NCBI GenBank assembly: GCA_002269645.1
Contig: NIVC01000625.1
Location: forward strand, 62,001 to 126,000
Reading direction: 5' to 3'
Origin: Macrostomum lignano
Taxonomy: Eukaryota
Length of the DNA: 64,000 nt
Each line of letters opens with the position of its first letter. The first letter of the stretch is position 1. A program made the translations under genes and the position numbers. This document shows, one piece after another, positions 19,091 to 61,236 of the stretch. A model generated the notes under the pieces. That model searched no databases and was not told the DNA's origin. It worked only from the letters and a program-made list of their open reading frames with translations.

Positions 19091-19477
19091 CAAGCAACTG
19101 CTTGAGATTACTACTGTTGAATAATTGCGAAGAGAGTTATTAACTCAATGCTATTAAATACCTGATTTACTCTCTGTTAATTGTGACTTGTTTAAATTTC
19201 TGCGTATATCTTTGTCTGTTGTCTGTTTTCTGAGCCATAATATTACTAGTAACCGTAGCTCGTATATTAGCTGCTTCTTAAATAAAAGAGTACTCTATGA
19301 ATTAAAAAATTTCCACTGCATTCTGCTTTTCTGTGTATTGCACCAATTTTTATCAACCTTCTTTTCTTCGTCGATATTTTAACTGCATGCATGGGCAGAG
19401 GGAACAGGGTAGCCCGGTGATGTGGGAAATTTTTAACCAACTATCGGAGATTGACCCAGTCAGTGGGTCACTTCATA

Positions 19478-28832: not shown

Positions 28833-31800
28833 CTAAGAGTAGAGCGCCAGCTGAAGAAGCTGAAAGTGAAATTCAAATCAGGCATGAGTTTTTAAATCGT
28901 ATTTAACTGAATATTCGTTCGTAAAATACAAAATCGCAACCGACAAATTTGCACAATTGTAACAACTTGCCTCATCCAAGCCGAATGAGGTCTGGGCCTT
29001 CCCATCGCTGTTCTGGGCCCTGAAACTCTCCAGAATGGTCCTCATGCGGACGCACAGAATCACAAAATCGTCGAACTTGATGGACCCGGACTTGCCAGCG
29101 TACCGCATCACCAGGGACTGGTAGATCTTGTTTGGCACTCGGTAGCCTGAAGTTTGGAAGGCCGATATGGTTTTATTGAGCTGATAGGGAACCTTCGGTT
29201 TGTAAACTCTTAGCTTTACTGAACCGAAGTTTTTAGTTTGTTGCTGGGGGCTTTCGGCACCCCCGCCAATCAAGGCAGCAGGCGACTCTACTAGTAGGTC
29301 ACAAGTACGGCTCGTAGTGATGCCGGTTTCGCTCATCCAGAGTAAGCACAGGCCCACACTCACGCAGGATGTACAGCGGCCCCGAATTTCATCGTCAGGC
29401 ATGAACAGTCTGCACCCAAAGACTACTCAAAGTAGAAGGACGGGAAACTACGTTTCTTGGACATTTTAGTAGGCAGGTTTTACCGAAAGACTACATTACG
29501 GTGATAGCAGCCCAAAAAATGTTATTACTTTTGATCGGAGGCAGACTCAGTGTTCATCTTTTGATATAACTTGCCTTTCTTATAGCTCTATTGATAAGGC
29601 AAGATATATCAAAATATGAACACTCTCTTCCTATCAAAAGCAATGTAATAATATAGCATGGTTTCCGAGGTCTTTAATGATATGGCCGAGGGGAACGAAG
29701 CTCTCGATGCTCTATGGTTATTGCTACACGATGATAGTTTTCATAGCTATTTTTAAAATAGACCTAAAAACGGATCGGTCCGAGGACGCGAAAGACCGCT
29801 TAACTGGGAATCACGCATTAATGACCGATGTCGATTTTTCTTATGTCTGTGGCCAAAACCCACAGAATTGGAAAGAGAGGGACGCGAGAGCCAGAGCCAT
29901 CAGAGAGCGCTAATAGACATTCACTGGCGACAAAATGGAGGACGATTCATCATATCCCACCGGTCTACTGCACATTGAATACGGTGACATCGTCGGACTG
30001 ACAAAGGCCGAAATAGCAGCACGAATGGAAGCCGACAACATTCTATTCGCCATGGAATGGACGTGAACAGTCTGGAAGACATGGCTTCCGGATTCGCCTC
30101 GAGGATTGAGGATTCGACGATCTCCGAACTGCTGGACTCTAGAGCTACGACCAACGAAGACATCGAGATTATTATGCGTGACCTGGATCTGGTAGAGGTG
30201 TGCTGGACATGAGCCGCCGGTAAATGGCCCTCAAGATGCCAGTCTGTCTATTGCTGAAACCACATGTACAGCTACAGTTACCACGGCTTCATCTGCTTCC
30301 AGTGGTGGATTCCATGGAACCTTCAGCGGCTGTACGTTCAATGTCTATTACAAGTGAGAATTCTAATTTGAAACATGGTGACAATCTGTTGCGTTGAACA
30401 ACAGTAGTGCATTATTAGTGACCTATAAAGTTTCATTGTTATTGGCTGCATTGTATTTTTTCTCTCGGCTTGTTCTATCGTTGTTTATGTTAATCGTTGG
30501 ATTTTAAAAAGTCATATACAACAAATATATGTCTTGCTTCTTGTTGAGCTTCAAAGCGACCATAGACAATATAAATCGCAGTGTAATTCCGGGATTCCCT
30601 AGGGAAATCCCAGGGACGCGAAAGACCGCTTTCATGGTGTAGCAATAGCATTTTTTGTGCTGAAAAGATTAAAACCTATCTCCGAAATGTAGTCTTTAGG
30701 TAAAACCTATCTCCGAAATGTAGTCTTTAGGTAAAACCTATCTCCGAAATGTAGTCTTTAGGTAAAACCTGTCTCCTAAATGTAGTCTTTAGGTAAAACC
30801 TGTCTCCGAAATGTAGTCTTTAGGTAAAACCTATCTCCGAAATGTAGTCTTTAGGTAAAACCTATCTGCGAAATGTAGTCTTTAGGTAAAACCTATCTCC
30901 GAAATGTAGTCTTTAGGTAAAACCTGTCTCCTAAAAATTTCCTAGAAACGTAGTTGTCACTAGTTGAGTAGTCCTTGTCTGTGCCTTTGGAGTTGGTCTT
31001 CGTGGTGTGAATCGCACGACGCACCAGCTCAGGGGAAATTTTAGTACGCGATTCCCAAATTAATCCGGCTGAGCACAGAAGGGAACCCAGGTTACTTTGA
31101 TTCTTGTACAAGAGAATCAGGCGAGTTACCACCGCTGAGCTACTCTGTGCCATCCCAACCCCCAACCACAGCTCAGAAACAGCGCAATCCCCAGTGGAGC
31201 ACGGACCCATGCATCCCAGAGCGGCGCGCAGCTCAAAGCTGTTGAAGTCGCCCGAGCTGTCAGCGTCGAAGGCCTTGAACACGACACTCCAGAGCCGGAG
31301 GCACTTCCAGAGCGCTTTGAACTCATCGAATTGCAAATAGCCACTCTGGTCAACGTCAACGAATGCAAGAAGCGATCGGCAAGCCTCCTTGGAGAAGCCG
31401 GTGAAGCCCGAAGGACCTGTAGGAAAAGTTCGTTGTTCGTTTTATTTTATTTTGAAAGTGACTTGTGAATGCTGAACAAGTAACAAGTGCGTAAAAAACT
31501 ACCTGATTTGGTGAACGCCATGTTCAGGATCTCCATCAGGTCCTCCACAACGAAGCCGGGCCGATCGCCCATCAGAATGCTGAAAGCTTTGCACGCGGCG
31601 GCCTCCATCAGCTTCTCCCTCTCGGTTGGTTCCACGTTCTTTTCTGAGTCAGTCCCGCCACCGACGGTGCCGAGTTCCTGCTCAGAAGAAGTTGGTGGCT
31701 GTTGAGAATTTAGCGTTCCAACGTTTTCGAAGTTTGGTTACCTTCCAGCTGCTTTAGATGCGGCTGCAAATATTAGTTCAGTTTTTCACCTTCCTATAGA

Positions 31801-33772
31801 AACCTGCGCACCATCCATTTTTAAAGAAGTTTCCCTCACTCACCTCGACTTCGGGCACATTCACGGTGTCGTCCATCTCGTCGGATTCGTTCGGCTGCTC
31901 AGAGTAGATCCGGAGCAGGAACTCCGCCTCCATGTTCGGATCGAAGGTGCTGGGCACAATAATGTAGGTGCCAGGAGCCAATTTGTGCCGGCCGGTGATC
32001 TCGCGGGTATCGCCGAATGTCGGCGACCTGGCGGCACTGGCCTTGTACTTGAAGAAGTTCATTTCCTTCGGGCCCGGCGGATCCGACTCGCCAACTTGGT
32101 AGAGGATGTAGCCGATGAAATGATTTGCTGCCCCCTGCTTTCGCATGTTCTTCTGCATGAGCCCGATGATCACTGAGCCCAGGTCCTCATCATCGCCCTC
32201 ATCGGGGTCCACAATTTTCACTTGGAATTGCGGATTCAGCCAAAAGGAGTCCAGGTACTTGCGGCAGCCTCCGGCGTTCACGTTGCGAACCCAGCTGCCG
32301 TGGTGGGTGATGGCTTCCCAGCGCGTCTTTCCCGCGGTGCTGTCCTGTCCGAGGGAGTCGGGACCCAGGTGGCAGATCTCAACCTTGTGGAAGTTCTGCG
32401 CAAAGTCGTCGAAACTCATCCAGAATTCGCCGTCGTCGGCATTCGACAGGCCGATGCGCTGCTTTTCTTCGACACTTAGCTGGTCCCATTCGCTGGAGTC
32501 GTCTCCCCAGCTGCCCTTCCACTCCTCCTCGTTACCCCAAGGATTTCTGATTCTCACAAGACACTCCTCGTCACCAGACAGCAGTTTTACCTGAGGATTG
32601 TTTTACATTTTCAACAGTTACGATACGAGCTCCTTATATATATTTGAGTTTAAGAGAATAATTACCTACCTTTTCTACAGCCGTAATGGAGTAGGCATGC
32701 CCCATGATCAACCCATTTTCCAACCTGGCCTCAATTTGATTGGCATCTGCATTGATTCCGCAGCCCATCAGCGAGCACCTCTTTGTCGCCTTATGCATAG
32801 TCTCAAACAACTCAGCCGAAGGCCCGTTAACAAGATCGAAGAATTCGGTTATTCCTCCAGTAAAGTCCTCCATGGCCTCGGAGCTGGAGCCACCGACAAG
32901 AGCTCGGTAGCTGCCCATTGTTTTGGCATATGCTTTTTCCAGGAGAGCAGACCAGAACTCATCCGAGTCCGCTGAGTGCATGAAGATCAGCTGGTTAGCA
33001 TAGGTAGGCAGACGGTCGTCAATCCAGATGTCTTTCCACTCGCCAAACATCCAGAAACGAAACTTGAACATTCCGCAGTATTTTTTATCGAAAAACTCCT
33101 GGTCAGTTGGCACTACTTGGTCGAAGAGGTCCTGGTACATCGACAATGAGGCCACGGCTGCCAACAACCAACAGTCTCCTAGAACAGGGATTAACTAGCT
33201 TTAATTTATTTGAAACTTGAGCATCTGCCGATCTCAGCACCACCCTGACTCGAAGTCCTGGACTCACCGATCGCTCCTTGACGAACATCAAATCGGCTTG
33301 TGCCATCGCTGACAAACTTTGCCGTGTCGCAAAACTCCTGAAATTTATGGAATTAGCCGTGATTATGAGTGTACTTTTAACAGTGCTATCGTTCTGTGAA
33401 TAAATGGTTTCATTCTACGGATCGTCTTACTGGAGGTCGCTTCCAGACAATCTCAGCTCCCGGAGGGAGGGCTTCATACAGGTCATCAGGCAGCACAGAA
33501 TCGTCGGCCGGAAACTCCAGGTCCTCGAACAGCTCACCCTTGGACCTCAGCTCGTCCTGCTGAGCCAGCAAGCTTTGCTGGCTTCGCCGCAGCTCCTCCG
33601 ATACTTTGACAGCCAGTCGATTTGAGCCTTCAAAGAACGCCATGGCTGGTGAGTGTTGAGAGAGAGAACAGCAGCGACTCAAGCCTGCACTTCGATCTAC
33701 CTTACCTGGCGCGAACAATTTAGAGGGCTCGTAGGGGTGCACAGAGGGTGGCTGCCATTCAGCCGATTCCAT
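28833..33772 (-). CDS. Classical calpain (CysPc + C2-like domain III + penta-EF-hand); exons 33772-33706, 33645-33431, 33337-33268, 33178-32670, 32590-31844, 31698-31503, 31416-31207, 29146-28971, 28859-28833
   Basis: FEDLEFPA and WKRP motifs; catalytic QGAIGDCWLLAA (Cys), GHAYSIT (His), RIRNPWG (Asn); domain III AGGCR...NPQF and PSTFDP; EF-hands DVDQSGYLQFDEF and DADSSGDFNSFEL; C-terminus LLQLALYS*. All junctions are in phase. Confidence 0.96.
29549..30660 (+). mobile_element. Probable internally deleted Crypton-like (tyrosine-recombinase transposon) relic
   Basis: Broken ORF pieces SGFASRIEDSTISELLDSRATTN (~30057-30210) and GTFSGCTFNVYYK* (30316-30357) resemble N- and C-terminal motifs of animal Crypton proteins. 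A 29-bp hairpin (29549-29624) and a 17-bp direct repeat GGACGCGAAAGACCGCT (~29783, ~30613) are present. No recombinase core remains. Confidence 0.45.
30671..30932 (+). repeat. 31-bp tandem repeat (AAAACCTATCTCCGAAATGTAGTCTTTAGGT)n, ~8.5 copies; an amplified subterminal segment of the right inverted arm
   Basis: Period 31 (30671, 30702 ...); a single inverted counterpart lies at ~29474-29501. Confidence 0.95.
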
Positions 33773-37232: not shown

Positions 37233-38162
<930 letters not shown>

Positions 38163-40450: not shown

Positions 40451-41257
40451 TCGGATGTACCAGCTGGAGCAGTCGCTCACCTATTCGTCAAAAGTCAGTG
40501 AAAATTCTATATCAGACACTTAATTACATAAATCAAAGACGTTGATGGTCAGAGTTATCGGTATAATTTATCGGGTTAAAATATTGATTATAATTATATT
40601 GATTGAACTACCGATGCACTCAGATCAGGTCTTAGTGATGGACAGAGCGACCCTATCTATTCTGAACACCATGGGGCAGCGAGTTTTCGTTGGGCTGTAA
40701 AACAAACATTCTGCCGCAAACTGGAATCCTAAGCCAGAGAATGTGGCTTCCGGTCAGGAGCTCCCGCTGGGAGTCGAGCCAAGCCAGGCGAGGTGCTCAC
40801 AAATAATTGGCGCCAGGATATTCGGCAAACCGACTTGTTGAGAGGAGGTTTTGAAGTCCGTGCTTCTGTTGTGCACCATACACGCCCCGGATGTCGGCAG
40901 AGTCCCAAGCTAACGGGTTTGCACTTTAACCCAGGCTGCCTAACAGCATTCAGATGCGAGCTAGATTGGTATCCTGCTCAAAAACCGGCATGTCATGTCT
41001 GCCCGATGGCCCACACGAACTGCGCGAGTTTATGCAAATTGAGCCGCCAAGGGGCAGGCAGAAAGCGGCTTTCAAAGCGGGCTGCCTTGGCGAGGCGCTG
41101 ACTTAATTGACCAATGCACAGAATATTTATGGGAAATAAGGCGAGTGGGAAGCTATTAAACAAAATCAACCCGATTCCCAACTGAAAAGGCCTCAGATGG
41201 ACAAGGGTGAGCTTGGCCGCCCGCGATTTCAGTTGGTCACTACATTTTCAAGTATCT

Positions 41258-43270
41258 TTCAGTGGGTTGCCACAAACCTCCAATCATTCATGGGTTGCCA
41301 CAAACCCCAAATCATTCATGGGTTGCCACAAACCCCAAATCATTCATGGGTTGCCACAAACCCCAAATCATCCAGTGGGTTGCCACAAACCCCAAATCAT
41401 TCTGGGTTGCCACAAACCCCAAATCATCCAGTGGGTTGCGACAAACCCCAAATCATTCAGTGGGTTGCCACAAACCCCAAATCATTCAGTGGGTTGCCAC
41501 AAACCCCAAATCATCCAGTGGGTTGCGACAAACCCCAAATCATTCAGTGGGTTGCCACAAACCCCAAATCATTCAGTGGGTTGCCACAAACCCCAAATCA
41601 TTCAGCGGGTTGCCACAAACCCCAAATCATTCAGCGGGTTGCCACAAACCCCAAATCATCCAGTGGGTTGCGACAAACCCCAAATCATCCAGTGGGTTGC
41701 CACAAACCCCAAATCATTCAGCGGGTTGCCACAAACCCCAAATCATGCAGTGGGTTGCCACAAACCCCAAATCATTCAGTGGGTTGCCACAAACCCCAAA
41801 TCATTCAGTGGGTTGCCACAAACCCCAAATCATTCAGTAGGTTGCGACAAACCCCAAATCATTCAGTAGGTTGCGACAAACCCCAAATCATTCAGTAGGT
41901 TGCCACAAACCCCAAATCATTCAGTAGGTTGCCACAAACCCCAAATCATTCAGTGGGTTGCCACAAACCCCAAATCATTCTGGGTTGCCACAAACCCCAA
42001 ATCATTCAGTAGGTTGCCACAAACCCCAAATCATTCAGTGGGTTGCCACAAACCCCAAATCATCCGGTGGGTTGCCACAAACCCCAAATCATCCAGTGGG
42101 TTGCCACAAACCCCAAATCATCCAGTGGGTTGCCACAAACCCCAATCCACTCAGTGGGTTGCCACAAACCCCAAATCATCCAGTGGGTTGCCACAAACCC
42201 CAAATCATCCAGTGGGTTGCGACAAACCCCAAATCATTCAGTGGGTTGCCAAAACCCCAAATCATTCAGCGGGTTGCCACAAACCCCAAATCATTCAGCG
42301 GGTTGCCACAAACCCCAAATCATCCAGTGGGTTGCGACAAACCCCAAATCATCCAGTGGGTTGCCACAAACCCCAAATCATTCAGCGGGTTGCCACAAAC
42401 CCCAAATCATGCAGTGGGTTGCCACAAACCCCAAATCATTCAGTGGGTTGCCACAAACCCCAAATCATTCAGTGGGTTGCCACAAACCCCAAATCATTCA
42501 GTAGGTTGCGACAAACCCCAAATCATTCAGTAGGTTGCGACAAACCCCAAATCATTCAGTAGGTTGCCACAAACCCCAAATCATTCAGTAGGTTGCCACA
42601 AACCCCAAATCATTCAGTGGGTTGCCACAAACCCCAAATCATCCGGTGGGTTGCCACAAACCCCAAATCATCCAGTGGGTTGCCACAAACCCCAAATCAT
42701 CCAGTGGGTTGCCACAAACCCCAAATCATTCAGTGGGTTGCCACAAACCCCAAATCATTCAGTAGGTTGCGACAAACCCCAAATCATTCAGTAGGTTGCC
42801 ACAAACCCCAAATCATTCAGTAGGTTGCCACAAACCCCAAATCATTCAGTGGGTTGCCACAAACCCCAAATCATCCGGTGGGTTGCCACAAACCCCAAAT
42901 CATCCAGTGGGTTGCCACAAACCCCAAATCATCCAGTGGGTTGCCACAAACCCAATCCACTCAGTGGGTTGCCACAAACCCCAAATCATCCAGTGGGTTG
43001 CCACAAACCCCAAATCATCCAGTGGGTTGCCACAAACCCCAAATCATCCAGTGGGTTGCCACAAACCCCAAATCATTCAGTAGGTTGCGACAAACCCCAA
43101 ATCATTCAGCGGGTTGCCACAAACCCCAAATCATTCAGTGGGTTGCGACAAACCCCAAATCATTCAGCGGGTTGCCAAAAACCCCAAATCATCCAGTGGG
43201 TTGCGACAAACCCCAAATCATTCATAGGGTTGCCACAAACCCCAATCCACTCAGTGGGTTGCCCCAAACC
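41258..43270 (+). repeat. 29-bp satellite (CAGTGGGTTGCCACAAACCCCAAATCATT)n, ~68 copies
   Basis: Tandem unit visible; higher-order duplications present. Confidence 0.98.
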
Positions 43271-43513
43271 CTAATCCACTGCCCATTTTCCATTCCGTTT
43301 CAGTTTAGCAAGAGGCCAAAACCATAATTTCACTTCAAGTCCTTTTTTCTTAGAAGCAGACGGCACGTTGGCGTCGATAACCAGCATCAGAGCCAGTATA
43401 TTTGGTTAATAAAGACAAAAATGGTTCCAATCGGAAAGAGAAATGTTTCAAAATTTGAATTATAAACAAAATTTAATGATGAAATATTAAAATGAAGAAG
43501 TCTTCCACGGGGC

Positions 43514-46500
43514 TCAGGGCTTCGCTTCTTGGGGCGCCTCCTGCTTGAAGTCTGAGCGCATGATGTACAGTAGGAAGGCGAGGAACTGCAGCACGGCGGC
43601 GGCCACGGCCACCCAGTAGGACCAGCGCAGCGAGTTGCGGTGCGCCCGGTTCGCGTCCCCGTGGCTCACGAAGTCGCCCCAGACGGCCACGGCCACCAGG
43701 AGGCACAGAACTGCGCGAGCGAGGATGAGGGCGACAAGAAGGTTTGGGACTAGGTGTACATTATGACTAGGTGTACACGGTGCGTGAGAGGGCCAGGGGT
43801 TTGAGTTATGTCATAAATAGTGCAAAGCAATTTCCGATACAGAAGTCACACTACAGAATACAGAAATACAGAATACAGAATACAGCACACTACAGACTCT
43901 CAAAGTACAGCACACTGCGGACTCTCAAATACAGCACACTACAGACTCTCAAAGTACAGCACACTGCGGACTCTCAAATACAGCACACTACAGACTCTCA
44001 AAGTACAGCACACTATTGCAGACTCTCAAAGTACAGCACACTGCGGACTCTCAAATACAGCACACTACAGACTCTCAAAGTACAGCACACTATTGCAGAC
44101 TCTCAAAGTACAGCACACTGCGGACTCTCAAAGTACAGCACACTATTGCAGACTCTCAAAGTACAGCACACTGCGGACTCTCAAATACAGCACACTACAG
44201 ACTCTCAAAGTACAGCACACTGCGGACTCTCAAATACAGCACACTACAGACTCTCAAAGTACAGCACACTGCGGACTCTCAAATACAGCACACTACAGAC
44301 TCTCAAAGTACAGCACACTATTGCAGACTCTCAAAGTACAGCACACTGCGGACTCTCAAATACAGCACACTACAGACTCTCAAAGTACAGCACACTGCGG
44401 ACTCTCAAAGTACAGCACACTGCGGACTCTCAAATACAGCACACTACTGCAGACTCTCAAAGTACAGCACACTGCAGACTCTAAAATACAGCACACTACT
44501 GCAGACTCTCAAAGTACAGCACACTGCAGACTCTCAAAGTACAGCACATTACTGCAGACTCTCAAAGTACAGCACACTGCAGACTCTCAAATACAGCACA
44601 CTACTGCAGACTCTCAAAGTACAGCACACTGCAGACTCTCAAAGTACAGCACATTACTGCAGACTCTCAAAGTACAGCACACTGCAGACTCTCAAATACA
44701 GCACACTACTGCAGACTCTCAAAGTACAGCACATTACTGCAGACTCTCAAAGTACAGCACACTGCGCACTCTCAAATACAGCACACTGCAGACTCTCAAA
44801 GTACAGCACACTGTAGACTCTCAAAGTACAGGACACTGCAGACTCTCAAAGTACAGCACACTGCAGACTCTCAAAGTACAGCACACTGCAGACTCTCAAA
44901 GTACAGCACACTGCAGACTCTCAAAGTACAGGACACTGCAGACTCTCAAAGTACAGCACACTGCGGACTCTCAAATACAGCACACTGCAGACTCTCAAAG
45001 TACAGCACATGCAGACTCTCAAAGTACAGCACACTACAGACTCTCAAAGTACAGCACACTACAGACTCTCAAAGTACAGCACACTGCAGACTCTCAAAGT
45101 ACAGCACACTACTGCAGACTCTCAAAGTACAGCACACTACTGCAGACTCTCAAAGTACAGCACACTGCGCACTCTCAAAGTACAGCACACTACTGCAGAC
45201 TCTCAAAGTACAGCACATTACTGCAGACTCTCAAAGTACAGCACACTGCGCACTCTCAAATACAGCACACTGCAGACTCTCAAAGTACAGCACACTGTAG
45301 ACTCTCAAAGTACAGGACACTGCAGACTCTCAAAGTACAGCACACTGCAGACTCTCAAAGTACAGCACACTGCAGACTCTCAAAGTACAGCACACTGCAG
45401 ACTCTCAAAGTACAGGACACTGCAGACTCTCAAAGTACAGCACACTGCGGACTCTCAAATACAGCACACTGCAGACTCTCAAAGTACAGCACATGCAGAC
45501 TCTCAAAGTACAGCACACTACAGACTCTCAAAGTACAGCACACTACAGACTCTCAAAGTACAGCACACTACAGACTCTCAAAGTACAGCACACTACTGCA
45601 GACTCTCAAAGTACAGCACACTACTGCAGACTCTCAAAGTACAGCACACTGCGCACTCTCAAAGTACAGCACACTACTGCAGACTCTCAAAGTACAGCAC
45701 ACTGCAGACTCTCAAAGTACAGCACACTGCAGACTCTCAAAGTACAGCACACTGCAGACTCTCAAAGTACAGCACACTATTGCAGACTCTCAAAGTACAG
45801 CACACTGCGACTCTCAAATACAGCACACTACAGACTCTCAAAGTACAGCACACTGCGGACTCTCAAAGTACAGCACACTGCGACTCTCAAATACAGCACA
45901 CTACTGCAGACTCTCAAAGTACAGCACACTGCAGACTCTCAAAGTACAGCACACTACTGCAGACTCTCAAAGTACAGCACACTGCAGACTCTCAAAGTAC
46001 AGCACACTGCAGACTCTCAAAGTACAGCACACTGCAGACTCTCAAAGTACAGCACACTGCAGACTCTCAAAGTACAGCACACTACTGCAGACTCTCAAAG
46101 TACAGCACACTGCGGACTCTCAAAGTACAGCACACTGCAGACTCTCAAAGTACAGCACACTGCAGACTCTCAAAGTACAGCACACTGCGGACTCTCAAAG
46201 TACAGCACACTGCAGACTCTCAAAGTACAGCACACTGCGCACTCTCAAATACAGCACACTGCAGACTCTCAAAGTACAGCACACTGCAGACTCTTAAAGT
46301 ACAGCACACTGCAGACTCTCAAAGTACAGCACACTGCAGACTCTCAAAGTACAGCACACTGCGGACTCTCAAAGTACAGCACACTGCAGACTCTCAAAGT
46401 ACAGCACACTACTGCAGACTCTCAAAGTACAGCACACTGCAGACTCTCAAAGTACAGCACACTGCGCACTCTCAAATACAGCACACTGCAGACTCTCAAA

Positions 46501-49500
46501 GTACAGCACACTGCAGACTCTCAAAGTACAGGACACTGCAGACTCTCAAAGTACAGCACACTGCGGACTCTCAAATACAGCACACTGCAGACTCTCAAAG
46601 TACAGCACATGCAGACTCTCAAAGTACAGCACACTACAGACTCTCAAAGTACAGCACACTACAGACTCTCAAAGTACAGCACACTGCAGACTCTCAAAGT
46701 ACAGCACACTACTGCAGACTCTCAAAGTACAGCACACTACTGCAGACTCTCAAAGTACAGCACACTGCGCACTCTCAAAGTACAGCACACTACTGCAGAC
46801 TCTCAAAGTACAGCACATTACTGCAGACTCTCAAAGTACAGCACACTGCGCACTCTCAAATACAGCACACTGCAGACTCTCAAAGTACAGCACACTGTAG
46901 ACTCTCAAAGTACAGGACACTGCAGACTCTCAAAGTACAGCACACTGCAGACTCTCAAAGTACAGCACACTGCAGACTCTCAAAGTACAGCACACTGCAG
47001 ACTCTCAAAGTACAGGACACTGCAGACTCTCAAAGTACAGCACACTGCGACTCTCAAATACAGCACACTGCAGACTCTCAAAGTACAGCACATGCAGACT
47101 CTCAAAGTACAGCACACTACAGACTCTCAAAGTACAGCACACTACAGACTCTCAAAGTACAGCACACTACAGACTCTCAAAGTACAGCACACTACTGCAG
47201 ACTCTCAAAGTACAGCACACTACTGCAGACTCTCAAAGTACAGCACACTGCGCACTCTCAAAGTACAGCACACTACTGCAGACTCTCAAAGTACAGCACA
47301 CTGCAGACTCTCAAAGTACAGCACACTGCAGACTCTCAAAGTACAGCACACTGCAGACTCTCAAAGTACAGCACACTATTGCAGACTCTCAAAGTACAGC
47401 ACACTGCGGACTCTCAAATACAGCACACTACAGACTCTCAAAGTACAGCACACTGCGGACTCTCAAAGTACAGCACACTGCGGACTCTCAAATACAGCAC
47501 ACTACTGCAGACTCTCAAAGTACAGCACACTGCAGACTCTCAAAGTACAGCACACTACTGCAGACTCTCAAAGTACAGCACACTGCAGACTCTCAAAGTA
47601 CAGCACACTGCAGACTCTCAAAGTACAGCACACTGCAGACTCTCAAAGTACAGCACACTGCAGACTCTCAAAGTACAGCACACTACTGCAGACTCTCAAA
47701 GTACAGCACACTGCGGACTCTCAAAGTACAGCACACTGCAGACTCTCAAAGTACAGCACACTGCAGACTCTCAAAGTACAGCACACTGCGGACTCTCAAA
47801 GTACAGCACACTGCAGACTCTCAAAGTACAGCACACTGCGCACTCTCAAATACAGCACACTGCAGACTCTCAAAGTACAGCACACTGCAGACTCTTAAAG
47901 TACAGCACACTGCAGACTCTCAAAGTACAGCACACTGCAGACTCTCAAAGTACAGCACACTGCGGACTCTCAAAGTACAGCACACTGCAGACTCTCAAAG
48001 TACAGCACACTACTGCAGACTCTCAAAGTACAGCACACTGCAGACTCTCAAAGTACAGCACACTGCGCACTCTCAAATACAGCACACTGCAGACTCTCAA
48101 AGTACAGCACACTGCAGACTCTTAAAGTACAGCACACTGCAGACTCTCAAAGTACAGCACACTGCAGACTCTCAAAGTACAGCACACTGCAGACTCTCAA
48201 AGTACAGCACACTACTGCAGACTCTCAAAGTACAGCACACTGCAGACTCTCAAAGTACAGCACACTGCAGACTCTCAAAGTACAGCACACTGCAGACTCT
48301 CAAAGTACAGCACACTGCAGACTCTCAAAGTACAGCACACTGCAGACTCTCAAAGTACAGCACACTGCAGACTCTCAAAGTAAAGCACACTGCAGACTCT
48401 CAAAGTACAGCACACTGCAGACTCTCAAAGTAAAGCACACTGCAGACTCTCAAAGTACAGCACACTGCAGACTCTCAAAGTACAGCACACTGCAGACTCT
48501 CAAAGTACAGCACACTGCAGACTCTCAAAGTACAGCACACTGCAGACTCTCAAAGTACAGCACACTGCAGACTCTCAAAGTACAGCACACTGCAGACTCT
48601 CAAAGTACAGCACACTGCAGACTTGCACAAAACGGCGCATTCTCTCGCAGCTTTCCAGGCTACACCAGCTGCGCCGCACTCACACGATGCCAGCAGGCAG
48701 CTGACGAACATCAGCCTGACTGTCTTGCTGTGCTGCGCGCTGCCCAGCCGAAGCCGCACCAGGCCGACCACCAGAGACGCCGCTGACGCTGCCAGGCCCA
48801 GAATGAAGGCGGCTTTTGTTTTTACAAAGTCGGCTGAGGCGGGAGCGAAGGGAGGCGGGAGGGTAGGAGGAGATTAAGATGAGGCACAAATTTGACAAGG
48901 TTTATTGATCCTCTCAGCTGAGAATCTCCGCAGCCTCCCCGATATAAAAACTGGTTACCGCCCTGCCGCAGCTCCCAAAGCTTCAGCATTTTCTGGCCAA
49001 GTCTGTAAGTGGCCGGCGGCCAATTCAATTTCGCTAATCGGTTACGAAACCTGTTGCAGTGCGCGGGGCTTGCGCTCGGATTTCATCTGGATGGCTGCGC
49101 GAGCGCTAAGAGGAGACCCACCTGTAGATATCGGCGCTAAGAGGAGACCCGCCTGTAGATATTGGCGCTAAGAGGAGACGCGCCTGTAGATATCGGCGCT
49201 AAGAGGAGACCCGCCTGTAGATATCGGCGCTAAGAGGAGACCCGCCTGTAGATATTGGCGCTAAGAGGAGACCCGCCTGTAGATATTAGCGCTAAGAGGA
49301 GACCCGCCTGTAGATATTAGCGCTAAGAGGAGACGCATCTGTAGATATTGGTGCTAAGAGGAGACCCGCCTGTAGATATTGGCGCTAAGAGGAGACCCGC
49401 CTGTAGATATCGGCGCTAAGAGGAGACCCGCCTGTAGATATTGGCGCTAAGAGGAGACGCGCCTGTAGATATTAGCGCTAAGAGGAGACGCGCCTGTAGA

Positions 49501-51717
49501 TATTAGCGCTAAGAGGAGACGCATCTGTAGATATTGGTGCTAAGAGGAGACCCGCCTGTAGATATCGGCGCTAAAAGGAGACGCGCCAGTAGATATCGGC
49601 GCTAAGAGGAGACGCGCCTGTAGATATTAGCGCTAAGAGGAGACCCGCCTGTAGATATTAGCGCTAAGAGGAGACGCAGCTGTAGATATTGGCGCTAAGA
49701 GGAGACGCGCCTGTAGATATTAGCGCTAAGAGGAGACGCGCCTGTAGATATTAGCGCTAAGAGGAGACGCATCTGTAGATATTGGTGCTAAGAGGAGACC
49801 CGCCTGTAGATATCGGCGCTAAAAGGAGACGCGCCAGTAGATATCGGCGCTAAGAGGAGACGCGCCTGTAGATATTGGCGCTAAGAGGAGACGCGCCTGT
49901 AGATATTGGCGCTAAGAGGAGACGCGCCTCTATTATGATATGTGCAATCCCACAGGTCCCAGAGTTTAGCATCTTAGTCATTGAATTTTGAGCTAAAAAG
50001 CCAGCAATTAAGAATCGTCCCCCAATCTCCCAGAAAGCCCCCACCCGGAATGAGAAGCGTCCAATTAGTCGGGCCGCCGCGGCGAAATTTTCCGATTCTG
50101 CCGCAGGCTGTTTCGATCACGTGACCTAGCAGCCTAGCGGCCGGACGGAGCCGAACGAGGAGGATTCGAAGAAAAAAAGGCGAGTTACTTTTTAAACCCG
50201 ATTGACAGCGCGCGGTGAGAGGGGGTTGGGGCGAAGCGTCTGCGACTTGAAAATTGGATGGCGAGCAGCAGGGGGGATTTGCAAGTCAAATGCCGCCGCG
50301 AGGAGGCTGCCGCGGCAAGCCGGAGCGGCACTTCAGCGGAGGCTTTAAAATTCCTGACTGGAGGGCTGGGGAGGCCGCGGCAGCAGATATCACAGCGCAC
50401 TCGCGCTTCCCGCGAGACCCGGGCCGACCCCCCCTCCACCTCGGAGCGGCAATTCCGCAGAATCGGGCATTCTCACCGCCATTAATTTTTATTTTTACCC
50501 CACCCGAGCACTGCTCAGTTGCTCAGCCCAGCCTCCCGGATGCGGTGGCTGTGGGGAAAGGAAGAAGTTTCGGTGGAAGTGGCTTTATACCTTATCGCCC
50601 AGTAGTTTTTTTCAGTTGAGCAAAGTCTGGAATCGAGATTCCCATCCTCGTAAATTCCGCTCACTGAGGAGGCTGCTGAGACTCGAGCAGATGGTGCTGT
50701 TTGCATTCTGGAGATGCTAAAATCCCTATGGGTCAGGATAACTCCCTCAGGACTTGGCGGCTTGAACTGGGGAGGCTATCGCCTGGCTGACAGGCTGGCC
50801 GAGTGTCTGTCTACCCTGGTGACCAGGATGTCTATTTAGACATCTTAAAATATAAACACCCTGTCTAGCAGGTGACTGTCTAGCAGGTGACTGTCTAACA
50901 GGTGACTGTCTAACAGGTGAATGTCTAACAGGTGACTGTCTAACAGGTGAATGGCCAGCAGGTGACTGTCTAACAGGTGACTGTCTAACAGGTGAATGTC
51001 TAACAGGTGACTGTCTAACAGGTGACTGTCTAACAGTTGACTGTCTAACAGGTGACTGTCTAACAGGTGACTGTCTAACAGGTGACTGTCTAACAGGTGA
51101 CTGTCTAACAGGTGACTGTCTAACAGGTGACTGTCTAACAGGTGACTGTCTAACAGGTGACTGTCTAACAGGTGACTGTCTAACAGGTGACTGTCTAACA
51201 GGTGACTGTCTAACAGGTGACTGTCTAACAGGTGACTGTCTAACAGGTGACTGTCTAACAGGTGACTGTCTAACAGGTGACTGTCTAACAGGTGACTGTC
51301 TAACAGGTGACTGTCTAACAGGTGACTGTCTAACAGGTGACTGTCTAACAGGTGACTGTCTAACAGATGACTGTCTAACAGGTGACTGTCTAACAGGTGA
51401 CTGTCTAACAGGTGACTGTCTAACAGGTGACTGTCTAACAGGTGACTGTCTAACAGGTGACTGTATAAGGCCCCCCTCCGAGCCGGAATCCCGCGCCGCT
51501 CACGCTCAGCAGAATGGTCCTCCTGCAGCACCACGGGCCAGCGGGCCAGCTGCGAGATGGACACGACTGCAGCAGCGAAGCCGGCGGCGCACATCGCCAA
51601 GATGGTCCGGTCTGCCGCAGTCACGGTCAGGCACATCACCCGCGCTCTGAGTGGAGGCTGCGGAGCTGCGTCGGAGTCGGGCTGGGGCAGCTCGATCAGC
51701 GGCGACCGGCTGATCAT
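43514..51717 (-). CDS. Claudin/PMP22-like tetraspan membrane protein; proposed exons 51717-51504, 50716-50665, 49002-48959, 48812-48684, 43710-43514 (~211 aa)
   Basis: Four hydrophobic segments (TILAMCAAGFAAAVVSI; AFILGLAASAASLVVGL; LMFVSCLLASFLCLLVAVAVW; SYWVAVAAAVLQFLAFLLY) and the typical L.WSYW..V motif before TM4. All five exons chain in phase. The two small middle exons are less certain and the canonical GLW-C-C motif is not seen. Confidence 0.62.
43875..48622 (+). repeat. ~4.75-kb 25-bp satellite (CAGCACACTGCAGACTCTCAAAGTA)n filling one intron
   Basis: Continuous array; explains the 800-1000-aa pseudo-ORFs. Confidence 0.98.
49102..49930 (+). repeat. 31-bp minisatellite (GCGCTAAGAGGAGACCCGCCTGTAGATATCG)n, ~26 copies
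   Basis: Period 31 (49141, 49172 ...). Confidence 0.97.
50863..51463 (+). repeat. 15-bp minisatellite (CTGTCTAACAGGTGA)n, ~40 copies
   Basis: Tandem unit visible; gives the (HLLDS)n pseudo-translation on the - strand. Confidence 0.97.
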
Positions 51718-51874: not shown

Positions 51875-52280
51875 GGTGCTGGCGCCCCTTGGTGCTGGCG
51901 CCCCTTGGTGCTGGCGCCCCTTGGTGCTGGCGCCCCTTGGTGCTGGCGCCCCTTGGTGCTGGCGCCCCTTGGTGCTGGCGCCCCTTGGTGCTGGCGCCCC
52001 TTGGTGCTGGCGCCCCTTGGTGCTGGCGCCCCTTGGTGCTGGCGCCCCTTGGTGCTGGCGCCCCTTGGTGCTGGCGCCCCTTGGTGCTGGCGCCCCTTGG
52101 TGCTGGCGCCCCTTGGTGCTGGCGCCCCTTGGTGCTGGCGCCCCTTGGTGCTGGCGCCCCTTGGTGCTGGCGCCCCTTGGTGCTGGCGCCCCTTGGTGCT
52201 GGCGCCCCTTGGTGCTGGCGCCCCTTGGTGCTGGCGCCCCTTGGTGCTGGCGCCCCTTGGTGCTGGCGCCCCTTGGTGCT
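51875..52280 (+). repeat. Near-perfect 16-bp minisatellite (GGTGCTGGCGCCCCTT)n, ~25 copies
   Basis: Near-identical units directly visible. Confidence 0.98.
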
Positions 52281-52282
52281 GT

Positions 52283-53934: not shown

Positions 53935-56438
53935 TCACGGCACCACTTCATATTCGTTTTCGTCAGCGGCATTCAGGTAGTCGGCCGGCCGCTCCGAGGC
54001 GCACATCTCGCAGCCCGGCCGCTCCGGCGGGTTCCGGTAGGTGCATATGGGACAGCTCCAGCCGGGCTGCGGGCGGGGGCGGCACCGCGAGTGAGGCGTC
54101 CGTCTGGGGAATCTAGCTGGGGAATCTAGCTGGGGAATCTAGCTGGGGAATCTAGCTGGGGAATCTAGCTGGGGAATCTAGCTGGGGAATCTAGCTGGGG
54201 AATCTAGCTGGAGAATCTAGCTGGGAAATCTAGCTGGGGAATCTAGCTGGGGAATGTAGCTGGGGAATAATTTAGCTGGGGAATAATTTAGCTGGGGAAT
54301 ATAGCTGGGGAATAATTTAGCTGGGAAATATAGCTGGGGAATAATTTAGCTGGGGAATATAGCTGGGGAATCTAGCTGGGAAATCTAGCTGGGGAATCTA
54401 GCTGGTGAATGTAGCTGGGGAATCTAGCTGGGGAATCTAGCTGGGGAATAATTTAGCTGGGGAATCTAGCAGGGGAATCTAGCTGGGAAATCTAGCTGGG
54501 AATCTAGCTGGGGAATAATTTAGCTGGGGAATATAGCTGGGGAATAATTTAGCTGGGGAATCTAGCTGGGGAATCTAGCTGGGGAATCTAGCTGGGAATC
54601 TAGCTGGGGAATCTAGCTGGGGAATAATTTAGCTGGGGAATCTAGCTGGGGAATCTAGCTGGGGAATAATTTAGCTGGGGAATCTAGCTGGGGAATCTAG
54701 CTGGGGAATAATTTAGCTGGGGAATCTAGCTGGGGAATCTAGCTGGGGAATAATTTAGCTGGGGAATCTAGCTGGGGAATCTAGCTGGGGAATAATTTAG
54801 CTGGGGAATCTAGCTGGGGAATCTAGCTGGGGAATAATTTAGCTGGGGAATAATTTAGCTGGGGAATCTAGCTGGGGAATCTAGCTGGGAAATCTAGCTG
54901 GGAATCTAGCTGGGGAATAATTTAGCTGGTAATATAGCTGGGGAATAATTTAGCTGGGGAATCTAGCTGGGGAATCTAGCTGGGGAATCTAGCTGGGGAA
55001 TCTAGCTGGGGAATCTAGCTGGGGAATAATTTAGCTGGGGAATCTAGCTGGGGAATCTAGCTGGGGAATCTAGCTGGGGAATAATTTAGCTGGGGAATCT
55101 AGCTGGGGAATCTAGCTGGGGAATAATTTAGCTGGGGAATAATTTAGCTGGGGAATCTAGCTGGGGAATCTAGCTGGGAAATCTAGCTGGGAATCTAGCT
55201 GGGGAATAATTTAGCTGGGGAATCTAGCTGGGGAATCTAGCTGGGGAATCTAGCTGGGGAATCTAGCTGGGGAATAATTTAGCTGGGGAATCTAGCTGGG
55301 GAATCTAGCTGGGGAATCTAGCTGGGGAATCTAGCTGGGGAATAATTTAGCTGGGGAATCTAGCTGGGGAATCTAGCTGGGGAATCTAGCTGGGGAATCT
55401 AGCTGGGGAATAATTTAGCTGGGGAATCTAGCTGGGGAATAATTTAGCTGGGGAATAATTTAGCTGGGGAATCTAGCTGGGGAATCTAGCTGGGGAATCT
55501 AGCTGGGGAATCTAGCTGGGGAATCTAGCTGGGGAATCTAGCTGGGGAATAATTTAGCTGGGGAATCTAGCTGGGGAATCTAGCTGGGGAATCTAGCTGG
55601 GGAATAATTTAGCTGGGGAATCTAGCTGGGGAATCTAGCTGGGGAATCTAGCTGGGGAATCTAGCTGGGGAATAATTTAGCTGGGGAATCTAGCTGGGGA
55701 ATCTAGCTGGGGAATCTAGCTGGGGAATCTAGCTGGGGAATAATTTAGCTGGGGAATCTAGCTGGGGAATATAGCTGGGGAATCTAGCTGGGGAATCTAG
55801 CTGGGGAATCTAGCTGGGGAATCTAGCTACCAATATGATAAGCAACTGCTGAGGTGTTTTACCTCGATATTTTCTGGAACTGGCGGCTGCGGCTGCATCG
55901 GCGGCTCAGGCAGCTGAGGCCGCAACGCTGGCGGCTGCGGCAGCGGCTCCGCCCACATTTTCTGTGCAGGGGCGGCGGCGGCGACTGGGGCGGGGGCGGC
56001 AGGCTGTCCGGGAGCTGGTGGCGGTCGCTGCTGTCCCCACCTGTGCTTGAACAGGTCCTTGCTCAGCAGGTAAAGATGCACAACCACCTCGTGCTTGTGC
56101 TCCAGCTCGCCCAGCGGGGTGCTGTCCGGCGGGATTCGGCCGCAGGCGACGCAGCACTGCGCCTGGCGGGGAATCTCCAGCTCGGAGGCCACGCGCATCT
56201 TCAGCTCCGCCACGGTGCTGGCCGTGCTGAACTTGAACAGCCGCGGCTTGGGCAGCTCTTTGTCGCGGTCGCGGAAGAACACCTTGACTAGGAGACCCTC
56301 GCTGGACTGCGGGAACACCCGGATGGAGCCGCCCGACTGGCACAGCTGCACCACCGCTTGCCTGGCAGCCTCCGCTTTCTGACTGCAGATGGCGTCCTGC
56401 AGCCGGTTGGCAAGGTCGGCAGGAGTCTGGTGGCCCAT
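53935..56438 (-). CDS. SHARPIN/HOIL-1L(RBCK1)-family LUBAC accessory subunit-like protein: LTM + UBL + Pro-rich linker + NZF; exons 56438-55863 and 54066-53935 (~235 aa; upstream exon possible)
   Basis: LTM-like [56 protein letters not shown]...[36 protein letters not shown] followed by a stop after 16 more residues. Phase-0 junction GAG|GTAAAA ... cgcag|CCC. Confidence 0.85.
54105..55828 (+). repeat. 13-bp minisatellite (CTAGCTGGGGAAT)n with 16-bp variants, ~125 copies, filling the SHARPIN-like intron
   Basis: Tandem unit directly visible. Confidence 0.98.
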
Positions 56439-57494
56439 TGCTAAAGCCAGAAGATGGCGATGAAGGGGGTGAGTCTCTAAAGAAAATCTTAAAGAATAAT
56501 TTAAGCATTTGTGATCAAGACATCAACATTAACATAAACGAAATTTGTGCCTTAGATAGAGTATTGACCTAAAAATTTTTAAATATATTTTAAGATAGTA
56601 AGTTGGCTAACCAAAATAGTTAACAATTATTGCTTTTCCACATCTTCTAATATCTTGTTACTATTACAAATGAAATTTAGAAATATCAATGATAATATTT
56701 TATTGCATAACATTTTAAATAGTTAACCAAATAAATATATTATCCTACTTTTATTCTAAGGATATAAATGGTTATTTATTTAGAAAACTTTGCAATCTTT
56801 TTACGCTAATGAAGCAGAAGAGCTTTGATCTAGAACTGGTCAACTGGAAGTATGCTATAGCTATACTAACATTTTCAAAGGACAAAACAAATATTTCAGC
56901 AAAATCTAATTTATAGTTAAAGTATTCCATCTAAAAAGATTATCTAAAATTTATTTTAAAGGGCCAAATGAAAAATCAGTAAAATTTCAAATGATAAAAT
57001 ATCAATATATTTATATTTTCGACTTTTAAAAATTAGTTTACTTGGATTAAAAGCAAAAACTGAAACGTTTTGAGCACCACCATTATGTCTCACTCCTCAG
57101 TAGTACTAACTACTATGGAATAAATATTTTTCCATTAAATATCACAGCTTCATCGTTTATGTCGTGATAAAAGTCATTAAATTTCGTGAAATCAAAAAAT
57201 AAAATCACAAAATCTGGTCTAGAGGTGCTACTAGCCATAATAAAAAACATGATAACGAAAACTTCAAGGTACTAAATCAAATGCAACAGTACCTCATTCT
57301 TTAACATTTTTGTTTCCCATTTAAAATCATTTTTAAAAGTAATATGTTACAAAAATTAAATTTATTCATTCAAAACATTTTTTGACAGCCTCTTTTGCTT
57401 TTATACTACTTTATTTGTTTAATCCTGTAAAAAATTTAAATCAAGTTTACTTCTTTCAAGAATTTCTTTCAAGATTAATTTTGGGTCCATCGTC

Positions 57495-58855: not shown

Positions 58856-59271
58856 CAAGAGAATTACAATATTCTAACAAAATTAGCATACATACCTATC
58901 AGCATACATATCATTAGCAATTAACTATAAGTTGAGGGTGACTGCGTCAATCGAGTAGAACTACATGTATGCTAAAGCTAGTAGTATGGCATAACAAATT
59001 GGTCGATTTAACATGGATGAAAAAACAGAAACGTCGGATTGGATTTTTACTTTTCGGTAGCCTAGTCAAAATTATTTGAATGATACTCAGTAGTATAACT
59101 GTATATTCACCAAAAATGTACATATGCTGTTTTCTATACTGAACATGCAATGCACATGAATTGTTGAATGCATCGATACGAGCACCGCAACATCGGAAGA
59201 AAATCAAAATTAATCGAGGGATGTATAACTCTTCAGCGTCACGTGTACAAATTATTGACTAATTTCCTCAC

Positions 59272-59703
59272 AGATACACTGTACAAGCACACACAGATAC
59301 ATTGTACAAGCACACACAGATACACTGTACAAGCACACACAGATACACTGTACAAGCACACACAGATACACTGTACAAGCACACACAGATACACTGTACA
59401 AGCACACACAGATACATTGTACAAGCACACACAGATACACTGTACAAGCACACACAGATACACTGTACAAGCACACACAGATACACTGTACAAGCACACA
59501 CAGATACACTGTACAAGCACACACAGATACACTGTACAAGCACACACAGATACACTGTACAAGCACACACAGATACACTGTACAAGCACACACAGATACA
59601 CTGTACAAGCACACACAGATACACTGTACAAGCACACACAGATACACTGTACAAGCACACACAGATATACTGTACAAACACACGGATCCACTGTACAAGC
59701 ACT
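59272..59703 (+). repeat. 23-bp minisatellite (TACAAGCACACACAGATACACTG)n, ~19 copies
   Basis: Tandem unit directly visible. Confidence 0.97.
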
Positions 59704-60147: not shown

Positions 60148-61236
60148 ATGATTCAGGCCAAGCTAAAGAGCTTCCGCGAGCTCAAGGCGGAGAAGGCCAA
60201 CCGGTTGGAGACCTGGCGGCTGCAGCTGCGGCTCCGCCTCATGGACAAGGAGAGCGGGCACCGGAGCCACCTCAGCTACTTGGAGCGGAAGAAAATCGTC
60301 AGGCAGATGGACTCGGTGCGCAGCACCACCGGCTACAGTCCTTTGAGCGTGCCGCCGCTGCCCGCCGACCGCGCGCTCAAGGACAGTCAGTACTTCACAT
60401 CTAGCCAGCGCGTCAGCGAACGCGCATTGAGAAAATGGCGCGTCCAGGAGGCGCTGCTGGAGAGGGACCTGCGACTCACGGATCTTGAGGTGCGCAAACG
60501 AGAAGAGCAGCAGGCGGCGCTGGTGAGACTGCTTGTCGATCTCGGTGTCATCGAGGAGAGCTCCCAGATTGATAGCCTGCCCAAGGACTCGCCGCGTCAG
60601 CAGCAGCAGCAGAGGTCACCGAATCAGCCGCCGCAGCAGCTGGCCCATCAACAGAAGCGCCAGCAGGTTCAGCGCCCGCTCACCGCGGCTGCCAGTTCCG
60701 GCCCGCTGCCTCCAGTCGCTGAGGAGAAGCGAACTGCCTCTGCCTCCACCGGGCAGAAGCCGCTTGATCAGCAGCAGTCGGGACCGCCGCAGCGCCGGGG
60801 CGTCACCTTCAGCGCCGACTCGAAGGCGAGTGAGGACTTGCCAGATGGCGCAGCGCCGGCGGCTCCGCTGTCCTCCATGCCACAATGGAAGCGGCAGCTC
60901 CGCTACGAGGCGCCACCGGCGCTGGGGGCGCAGCGCGAGTCGGCCCGCGTCCGCCTGGCCGTGTCGAAATCCGCTCTGCGCCGCGAGCTGCAGCAGATGG
61001 TGGACGCGCACGAGAAGGACCCGGCCAAGATCGCCCAGGCGGAGGCGGCGCGCCGCGAGCAGAGCCGCCTGGCCATGCAGCAGACGGTGAGCCACATGCG
61101 CCGGATGAGCATGCTGCCGCCAGAAGACCACGACCCCAGTCGGAGGAGCTCCGTGTCGGCGCTGCTGCTGCTGGACCGGGACAGCAGCGGCGACGAGAGC
61201 GACGGAGCTGACTCGGCCGCTGACAAGGAGGCCTGA
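60148..61236 (+). CDS. Uncharacterised 362-aa protein with an N-terminal coiled coil (weakly CCDC190-like), Gln/Pro-rich middle and acidic tail
   Basis: Uninterrupted GC-rich ORF with strong C/G-ending codon bias. An upstream donor CAG|GTGAGT at 59901/59902 suggests a 5' exon (possibly adding MQSCSG). Confidence 0.8.
   Translation: MIQAKLKSFRELKAEKANRLETWRLQLRLRLMDKESGHRSHLSYLERKKIVRQMDSVRSTTGYSPLSVPPLPADRALKDSQYFTSSQRVSERALRKWRVQEALLERDLRLTDLEVRKREEQQAALVRLLVDLGVIEESSQIDSLPKDSPRQQQQQRSPNQPPQQLAHQQKRQQVQRPLTAAASSGPLPPVAEEKRTASASTGQKPLDQQQSGPPQRRGVTFSADSKASEDLPDGAAPAAPLSSMPQWKRQLRYEAPPALGAQRESARVRLAVSKSALRRELQQMVDAHEKDPAKIAQAEAARREQSRLAMQQTVSHMRRMSMLPPEDHDPSRRSSVSALLLLDRDSSGDESDGADSAADKEA

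Follow-up and report, generated by a model that had tools for sequence, protein, structure and literature searches.

The accessory subunits of LUBAC (the complex that assembles linear ubiquitin chains), SHARPIN and HOIL-1L (RBCK1), contain a LUBAC-tethering motif (LTM), a UBL domain, and an NZF zinc finger in the same order; SHARPIN has in addition an N-terminal PH domain, and HOIL-1L has an RBR ligase domain. RBCK2 is a short splice form of mammalian RBCK1 that lacks the RBR. The LTM is a helix-helix-strand element located N-terminal to the UBL; when SHARPIN L176/I180 (equivalent to HOIL-1L L15/V19) are mutated, LTMs no longer pair and LUBAC loses its stability (PMC6044281). The NZF of HOIL-1L touches the proximal ubiquitin with residues of its core, and its tail helix, E232–Q247, grips the proximal ubiquitin and confers Met1 specificity (PMC10511788). 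The partner of these subunits, HOIP (RNF31), is reported to be broadly conserved across Metazoa, Spiralia among them (PMC12778051). For one spiralian, the mollusc Aplysia californica, a HOIL1 isoform without the TRIAD/RBR (XP_035825204.1) has been proposed as a functional analogue of SHARPIN (PMC9334734). The subject of this report is a gene, here called the UBL-NZF gene, on the minus strand of a 64,000-nucleotide stretch of the genome of the flatworm Macrostomum lignano (positions 62,001 to 126,000 of the forward strand of contig NIVC01000625.1, assembly GCA_002269645.1). This whole stretch is referred to as the window, and all coordinates below are positions within it.

From the analysis presented here we consider it fairly likely that the locus is an expressed two-exon M. 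lignano gene for a stand-alone, core-only relative of SHARPIN and HOIL-1, probably a ubiquitin-binding partner of HOIP/RNF31. Like SHARPIN, the flatworm protein has its LTM-like segment, UBL, and NZF in that order and ends about 20 residues past the NZF without a catalytic domain; the closest counterpart of the LTM-like segment is the LTM of SHARPIN, with L176/I180 conserved. Unlike SHARPIN, it has no N-terminal PH domain and starts directly at the LTM-like helix, Ala192 is replaced by Val, the GGD turn is gone, the Pfam LTM model is unmatched, and the UBL is very diverged. It resembles HOIL-1L in having the LTM-like segment at the extreme N-terminus with no PH domain, and its NZF is closest to that of HOIL-1L among solved structures, with R208/P209 kept; it differs from HOIL-1L in having neither an RBR nor the NZF tail helix, and its LTM-like segment shows no significant similarity to human or shark HOIL-1. 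The protein may predate the duplication that gave rise to the two paralogues, belong on the SHARPIN side, or be a shortened HOIL-1. The Aplysia isoform and RBCK2 also combine a UBL and an NZF without an RBR/TRIAD, but they are alternative isoforms of genes that also make the full RBR ligase, whereas the flatworm short form appears to be constitutive and the only product of a stand-alone gene, because the stop codon lies in the constitutive NZF exon and there is no RBR exon within 54 kb. TAB2/3, NPL4, and TRABID share with the flatworm protein a RanBP2-type C4 finger with a T-aromatic...Met ubiquitin-binding motif; however, the flatworm NZF scores only 15–20 bits with these proteins vs. 36 bits with HOIL-1L, and their partner domains are CUE, MPN, and OTU, none having an N-terminal UBL plus LTM-like helices. 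The gene model is already public, though unnamed, and an RBR-less form of HOIL1 has been described in a mollusc (PMC9334734); the initial annotation of this locus overrated its novelty. What differs is the core-only product, apparently the sole one of a stand-alone gene and without the family-specific domains of either paralogue.

The gene and its product have the following features.

55863–56438, minus strand: exon 1, 576 nt, 192 codons from the ATG at 56438–56436, from the open reading frame (ORF) and splice reconstruction.
54067–55862, minus strand: intron, 1,796 nt, with GT..AG ends, made up almost entirely of a 13-bp minisatellite.
53935–54066, minus strand: exon 2, 132 nt, residues 193–235 (43 codons) and the TGA stop codon at 53937–53935.
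56316–56423, minus strand: LTM-like region, residues 6–41, two helices and a short strand-prone segment.
56067–56294, minus strand: UBL (beta-grasp), residues ~49–124, from a sub-threshold Pfam ubiquitin match, AlphaFold2 (AF2), and Foldseek.
55863–56036, minus strand: Pro/Ala-rich linker, residues 135–192, predicted to be disordered from its composition and an AF2 confidence score (pLDDT) of 45–63.
53986–54060, minus strand: NZF (RanBP2-type C4 zinc finger), residues 195–219, from Pfam PF00641, the PDB match, and the HOIL-1 profile.

By its sequence, the NZF is clearly of the HOIL-1/SHARPIN subtype. Pfam Zn_ribbon_RanBP (PF00641) matched residues 195–219 with E=3.3e-7 and 29.9 bits, above the 27-bit cut-off. 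The zinc ligands are C197, C200, C211, and C214. Judged by sequence, the finger also has the ubiquitin-binding motif T201-Y202...M213, the CTY of which is shared by several vertebrate HOIL-1 proteins. Also conserved are R208 and P209, whose equivalents are the HOIL-1L core residues that touch the proximal ubiquitin (PMC10511788). The top four matches in a sequence search of the PDB were all HOIL-1L NZF entries (best, 3b08_B, 36 bits, E=4.4e-8); the next families were Nup153, at 24.5 bits and thus ~12 bits lower, and then TRABID, NPL4, and TAB2. With a profile of 14 vertebrate HOIL-1 NZFs the flatworm NZF scored 57.8 bits, vs. 13 bits for the best of 20,000 decoys, and the similarity ran past the zinc knuckle (RPGCEMC..ERPaDY). 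A tail helix of the HOIL-1L type is absent: the protein stops at residue 235, 13 residues past RPxDY, and AF2 predicted no helix there (pLDDT <50). Because this helix is lacking, strict Met1 selectivity in the manner of HOIL-1L is not expected.

The relationship extended over the whole protein. A word-indexed search of 5.8 billion proteins with a linker-deleted query (E<=10) gave 89 word-sharing candidates that were scored, among which the sole match outside Macrostomum was a SHARPIN-labelled bird protein from Buteo japonicus (P0129, UniRef A0A8C0B7S5; E=8e-8). In BLASTP, residues 6–223 aligned with residues 8–216 of this Buteo protein, collinear over all three modules (E=9e-16). Hmmsearch aligned residues 7–222 with positions 9–229 of a profile of 14 vertebrate HOIL-1 N-termini, again collinearly and with 62.6 bits, and hhalign with the vertebrate HOIL-1 N-terminal alignment, using templates that excluded the query, gave a 99.3% probability over residues 6–222. 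The AF2 model made with a multiple sequence alignment (MSA) had two N-terminal helices, a beta-grasp, and the NZF; in a Foldseek search of the PDB with this model, the LUBAC core structure 5y3t supplied the first two matches, its SHARPIN chain and then its HOIL-1L chain (127–129 columns; E=6e-7 and 1e-6), and generic UBLs followed from E=2e-5. The Buteo protein itself has mixed features. Its LTM-UBL is nearer to mouse SHARPIN than to HOIL-1L (124.6 vs. 110.7 bits), and it starts at the LTM without a PH domain, while its NZF is followed by a tail resembling that of HOIL-1 and by the first part of a RING. This protein may be mislabelled, chimeric, or an intermediate bird paralogue.

A protein unrelated to this family, which combined a UBL with a RanBP2 finger and came to look like a LUBAC subunit by convergence or chance, might be imagined from the fact that both domains are common and short and that the similarity of the UBL to the family is weak. 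We give that explanation hardly any credence, since the NZF similarity exceeds the zinc-knuckle consensus and lies ~12 bits above that of any other NZF family in the PDB; the domain order, spacing, and N-terminal helices align in one register; and the only significant non-Macrostomum match among the 89 candidates carried a SHARPIN label.

The N-terminus is best described as a divergent, SHARPIN-leaning, LTM-like motif, and it is the weakest element of the family assignment. Residues 6–41 were placed on the LTM in one register by MAFFT, hmmsearch, BLASTP, and hhalign. Comparison with the mouse SHARPIN LTM, whose sequence was taken from the 5y3t_C alignment, gave 13 identities in 36 positions by count and, by ungapped local Smith-Waterman alignment, Z=5.7, a score that none of 5,000 shuffles reached. 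The same method gave Z=5.9 with the LTM of the Buteo protein (0 of 5,000 shuffles) and Z=4.3 with that of one teleost HOIL-1; reversed-target controls were not significant, nor were the human and shark HOIL-1 LTMs. Hhalign with the LTM alone gave P=7e-4 in register; when LTM and UBL were used together and the NZF was left out, it gave P=2.9e-5, and the register was again the expected one. SHARPIN L176/I180 correspond to L13/I17 of the flatworm protein, and HOIL-1L A18 corresponds to A16. AF2 with an MSA predicted helices at residues 6–18 and 22–34 (pLDDT 84–92), and single-sequence AF2, which is free of vertebrate bias, again gave both helices, with a strand after them, at low confidence.

The UBL is genuine but very diverged; in sequence, ubiquitin is at least as close to HOIL-1 as this domain. 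The Pfam ubiquitin model gave 19.5–21.2 bits (E=2.5e-4 to 8e-4), under its cut-off of 25.4. The score with the HOIL-1 UBL profile was weak (11.7 bits), yet it ranked first against 20,000 composition-matched decoys. The order of secondary-structure elements in the AF2 model is that of a beta-grasp, and Foldseek aligned it with the SHARPIN UBL 5x0w_B (TM 0.84, root-mean-square deviation 1.9 Å); SUMO and ISG15 scored similarly, so that the subtype is not discriminated by this comparison.

Several results weigh against the assignment to the SHARPIN/HOIL-1 family. The Pfam LTM model (PF25393, 42 positions), which matched vertebrate HOIL-1 and the Buteo protein at 56–70 bits, was unmatched by both the full flatworm protein and its isolated N-terminus, even at E<=10, and a vertebrate HOIL-1 LTM profile scored −0.7 bits. 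The near-invariant GD (GGD) turn of the LTM is replaced by SQK, and the contact Ala (HOIL-1L A31, SHARPIN A192) is Val29. On the HOIL-1 UBL profile, ubiquitin itself scored ~20 bits vs. ~11 for the flatworm UBL. A phmmer search of 1.8 billion representative proteins with residues 1–135 found no HOIL-1/SHARPIN protein; the only matches were Macrostomum models, polyubiquitins, and one unrelated UBL-membrane protein. The LTM and UBL have diverged too far for a single-sequence search. When full-length human HOIL-1L was used as bait (it served only to fetch database sequences), the best 120 of 901 matches were all vertebrate, with no invertebrate orthologue among them. The confident AF2 model was built on an alignment of vertebrate HOIL-1 proteins and is therefore biased toward that fold, and the single-sequence model was poor (pLDDT 42), too low for a fold search. 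Finally, the three genomic copies of the gene (described below) have identical exons and so offer no dN/dS evidence of selection. For the LTM-UBL-NZF architecture proposed in the initial annotation, the NZF and the UBL fold are confirmed, and the evidence on the LTM is mixed, negative with PF25393 and the HOIL-1 profile and positive in the pairwise comparison with SHARPIN.

The strong divergence of the LTM and UBL, with the Pfam model unmatched, the GD turn and contact Ala changed, and no family member found with residues 1–135 among the 1.8 billion representatives, would also suit a SHARPIN/HOIL-1 descendant that no longer works with HOIP. Such a protein would act on its own, as a ubiquitin receptor or shuttle of the UBL-NZF kind, its UBL directed to the proteasome or another partner and its NZF binding ubiquitinated cargo. 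Drosophila LUBEL makes Met1 chains without an accessory subunit (PMC12778051); because an invertebrate HOIP need not have one, a HOIP-independent role is a live rival. We nevertheless judge it unlikely, because the LTM-pairing residues corresponding to L176/I180 are kept, the similarity of the LTM-like segment to SHARPIN is significant, and the whole architecture is collinear with that of the LUBAC subunits.

The gene structure was reconstructed from the genomic sequence and compared with public models. Exon 1, which encodes the LTM-like helices, UBL, and Pro/Ala-rich linker, ends with GAA AAT ATC GAG followed by the donor gtaaaa at 55863. The intronic array, found with Tandem Repeats Finder, occupies 54104–55828 and consists of 126 copies of the 13-bp unit CTGGGGAATCTAG (plus strand) with 86% matches. 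It is followed by a pyrimidine/C-rich acceptor, gccgcccccgcccgcag/CCCGGC (...cccgcag/CCCGGC). Joining exon 1 to exon 2 at this site is a phase 0, in-frame splice, which gives a product of 235 aa from the ATG. An alternative acceptor at the last repeat of the minisatellite, ccccag/ACGG (~54104), was rejected; it adds 37 nt by count and breaks the NZF frame. The NCBI protein BOX15_Mlig027610g1 ("hypothetical protein, partial"; P0001, 232 aa) is 100% identical to our product, has the same junction (PENIE/PGWSCP), and matches the exon 1 product from codon 4 onward. Because the gene set that includes this protein was built by a genome-guided procedure from RNA-seq-guided transcripts (PMC5730564), the splice is not merely a construct of the earlier reader, who had proposed that exon 1 is spliced over the minisatellite to a C-rich acceptor at 54066, adding an NZF and then a stop; the reconstruction and the public model agree on this. 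The 235-aa length given at that time was reproduced from the ATG, but the start is uncertain, because the annotated coding sequence (CDS) begins at the CAG at 56429, codon 4.

The gene is present on three contigs of the Mlig_3_7 assembly (GCA_002269645.1), with exons that are 100% identical in DNA and introns of 1796, 1725, and 1695 nt. Since the introns vary in length and the exons are identical, the copy number of the 13-bp array must change faster than point substitutions build up. The sequenced DV1 line of M. lignano has duplicated chromosomes (PMC8629364), and the presence of three copies fits this known duplication. Two other models of the locus, P0002 and P0003, are earlier ones of the UniRef/WormBase type. 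Exon 1 is frameshifted in both, one of the two is fused to a downstream minisatellite "exon", and the names of their clusters (protein kinase, diaphanous) are misleading.

The model might show only part of a normal, full-length gene for HOIL-1 or SHARPIN, with PH or RBR exons located elsewhere. At the 3′ end, this possibility could draw on the older M. lignano model P0003, which joins exon 1 to a site at ~51.7 kb; that model was rejected on account of its frameshift and because the "exon" to which it leads is a 15-bp minisatellite read as a pentapeptide repeat. The in-frame TGA lies in the NZF exon itself, 21 codons past the last NZF zinc ligand. A vertebrate HOIL-1 RBR profile, run with filters off on all six-frame stop-to-stop segments of the 64 kb, detected no RBR (best E=0.6). 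In tblastn with seven full-length vertebrate HOIL-1 proteins against the window, exon 2 alone was significant (E 1e-7 to 3e-12), the other matches being weak UBL matches on a polyubiquitin gene. Downstream of the UBL-NZF gene on its own strand there are ~10 kb of minisatellites, followed by genes for polyubiquitin (plus strand), calpain (minus strand), and TRAPPC13 (plus strand). Because of the TGA in the NZF exon, the absence of an RBR signal in the 54 kb downstream, and the unrelated genes found there, an RBR exon belonging to the UBL-NZF gene is very unlikely.

At the 5′ end, incompleteness of the gene is suggested by the "partial" flag on the NCBI record and by an AG acceptor 2 nt upstream of the ATG. 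Two sites were considered.

56426–56429, minus strand: probable spliced-leader trans-splice junction CAG/ACT, with AG at 56428–56427 and 56426 as the first mRNA base, deduced from coordinates.
56439–56442, minus strand: candidate acceptor ttAG/CA, 2 nt upstream of the ATG, present in the sequence.

In all three genomic copies the public CDS begins at the CAG (56429, codon 4) and not at the ATG. A transcript containing the ATG would be called complete; thus the boundary of the annotated mRNA falls inside codons 3–4. In M. lignano, a 35-nt spliced leader, with ...TTGCATG as its last bases, is added to the products of about 30–39% of the genes at acceptors with the motif [T/C]TNCAG (PMC8629364), and the annotation pipeline for this species cuts transcripts at trans-splice sites (PMC8629364; PMC5730564). 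The context at the proposed junction is ATGGGCCACCAG/ACTCCT. A leader AUG joined after the CAG is in frame (AUG ACU CCU GCC, giving MTPADL), and the annotated CDS starts with exactly the 3 nt that the leader ATG would overlie. Judging from these sequence features, the mature protein probably begins MTPADL and has 232 aa, through spliced-leader trans-splicing at CAG/ACT. Trans-splicing at this position would rule out a PH exon upstream and would explain the 5′-partial flag. The ttAG/CA site is less likely to be in use, because a transcript starting there would hold the ATG and be called complete, unlike the 5′-partial model. This is the acceptor ggctttag/CAATG of the initial annotation; it is present as described, but upstream exons probably do not enter through it, given that the annotated CDS starts at CAG 56429.

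The sequence upstream gave the same picture. The frame upstream of the ATG contains stops, and the ORF and the public CDS start 3–6 residues before the LTM-like helix. The 3.7 kb that separate the gene from its divergently transcribed neighbour are AT-rich and repeat-rich, and the minus-strand ORFs found there are repeat-derived, AT-rich, or antisense to the neighbour; we found no plausible exon upstream. The PH family was absent from Pfam scans of the protein, and the upstream ORFs were judged by inspection, not run against Sharpin_PH. The absence of both RBR and PH from the exons, as first described, therefore holds, with a best E of 0.6 in the six-frame RBR search and no plausible upstream exon. 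We therefore give little weight to the possibility of an incomplete model of a full-length gene. The transcript-based public model has exactly two exons, with no extra PH or RBR exons, and the best matches were the SHARPIN-labelled Buteo protein and the HOIL-1L NZF structure rather than unrelated UBL-NZF proteins; on these two points, which the earlier reader had singled out as decisive, the earlier reading is supported.

If the protein is a HOIP partner, as we favor, its action can be outlined from the better-known subunits. Its mRNA would start by trans-splicing at CAG/ACT; the leader would supply the AUG at which translation begins, and no coding exon would lie further upstream. Its UBL would dock on a UBA of a flatworm HOIP/RNF31 orthologue, and the partner of the LTM-like helices would be another LTM, either that of a second copy of the protein, in a homodimer, or that of a different protein. 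T201-Y202/M213 in the core of the NZF would serve to bind ubiquitin on substrates or chains, and the protein would serve, like SHARPIN, as a non-catalytic ubiquitin-binding adaptor and stabiliser. The label of LUBAC subunit is thus given by homology. A list that pairs M. lignano transcripts with human homologues includes RNF31 (PMC5173321, supplement file 3); RBCK1, SHARPIN, OTULIN, and Mlig027610 were not found in the searched supplements of M. lignano papers (including PMC5173321), and a literature search on HOIP/LUBAC in flatworms and on evolution of the RBR family gave nothing useful.

A bolder proposal, which we regard as distinctly doubtful, is that a single core-only accessory subunit serves linear ubiquitination in Macrostomum, and perhaps in flatworms, with a SHARPIN-like LTM homodimer replacing the HOIL-1L/SHARPIN heterodimer. 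If this were true, the single-subunit system would represent either what existed before HOIL-1 and SHARPIN were duplicated or a derived, streamlined form, and the RBR of HOIL-1 and the PH domain of SHARPIN would be dispensable additions to a minimal module for tethering and ubiquitin binding. Partnership of the protein with a flatworm HOIP would by itself mark out the smallest set of parts with which a LUBAC accessory subunit can function (tethering helices, UBL, and NZF). Because M. lignano supports RNA interference and transgenesis, it would then offer a tractable system for the roles of accessory subunits before vertebrate immune signalling. The gene also bears on the origin of HOIL-1 and SHARPIN from a common ancestor, and its identification lets a "hypothetical protein" in three Mlig_3_7 copies be annotated. 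The significance is limited, because RBR-less HOIL1 products were already known and the function here is a predicted one only.

The remainder of the window was also surveyed. The divergent neighbour, at 60148–61236 (plus strand), encodes a 362-aa Gln/Ser/Arg-rich protein without a Pfam match; in all three copies it lies beside the UBL-NZF gene. The polyubiquitin gene, at 37245–38162 (plus strand), has four head-to-tail units with a 228-nt period, 97% matches, and an extra terminal Gln; it lies ~16 kb from the UBL-NZF gene, and we saw no reason to link the two. Classical calpain exons are found at 28878–33167 (minus strand), with strong matches to Peptidase_C2 and Calpain_III, and ORFs at 28878–29402 and 30893–31336 resemble a calpain penta-EF-hand tail, with no Pfam match. 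An exon for the N-terminal domain of TRAPPC13 is located at 13911–14675 (plus strand; Pfam E=4e-47). Approximately 22.6 kb of the 64 kb (~35%) is in ~20 high-scoring minisatellite arrays with periods of 13–97 bp, many of which give long spurious ORFs; examples are 357-1245, 19469-24531, 41254-43271, 43881-48623, 49103-49929, 50861-51468, 51875-52281, 53192-43, 54104-55828, and 59269-59702. The 16-bp array at 51875–52281 has 25 copies and is 100% perfect.

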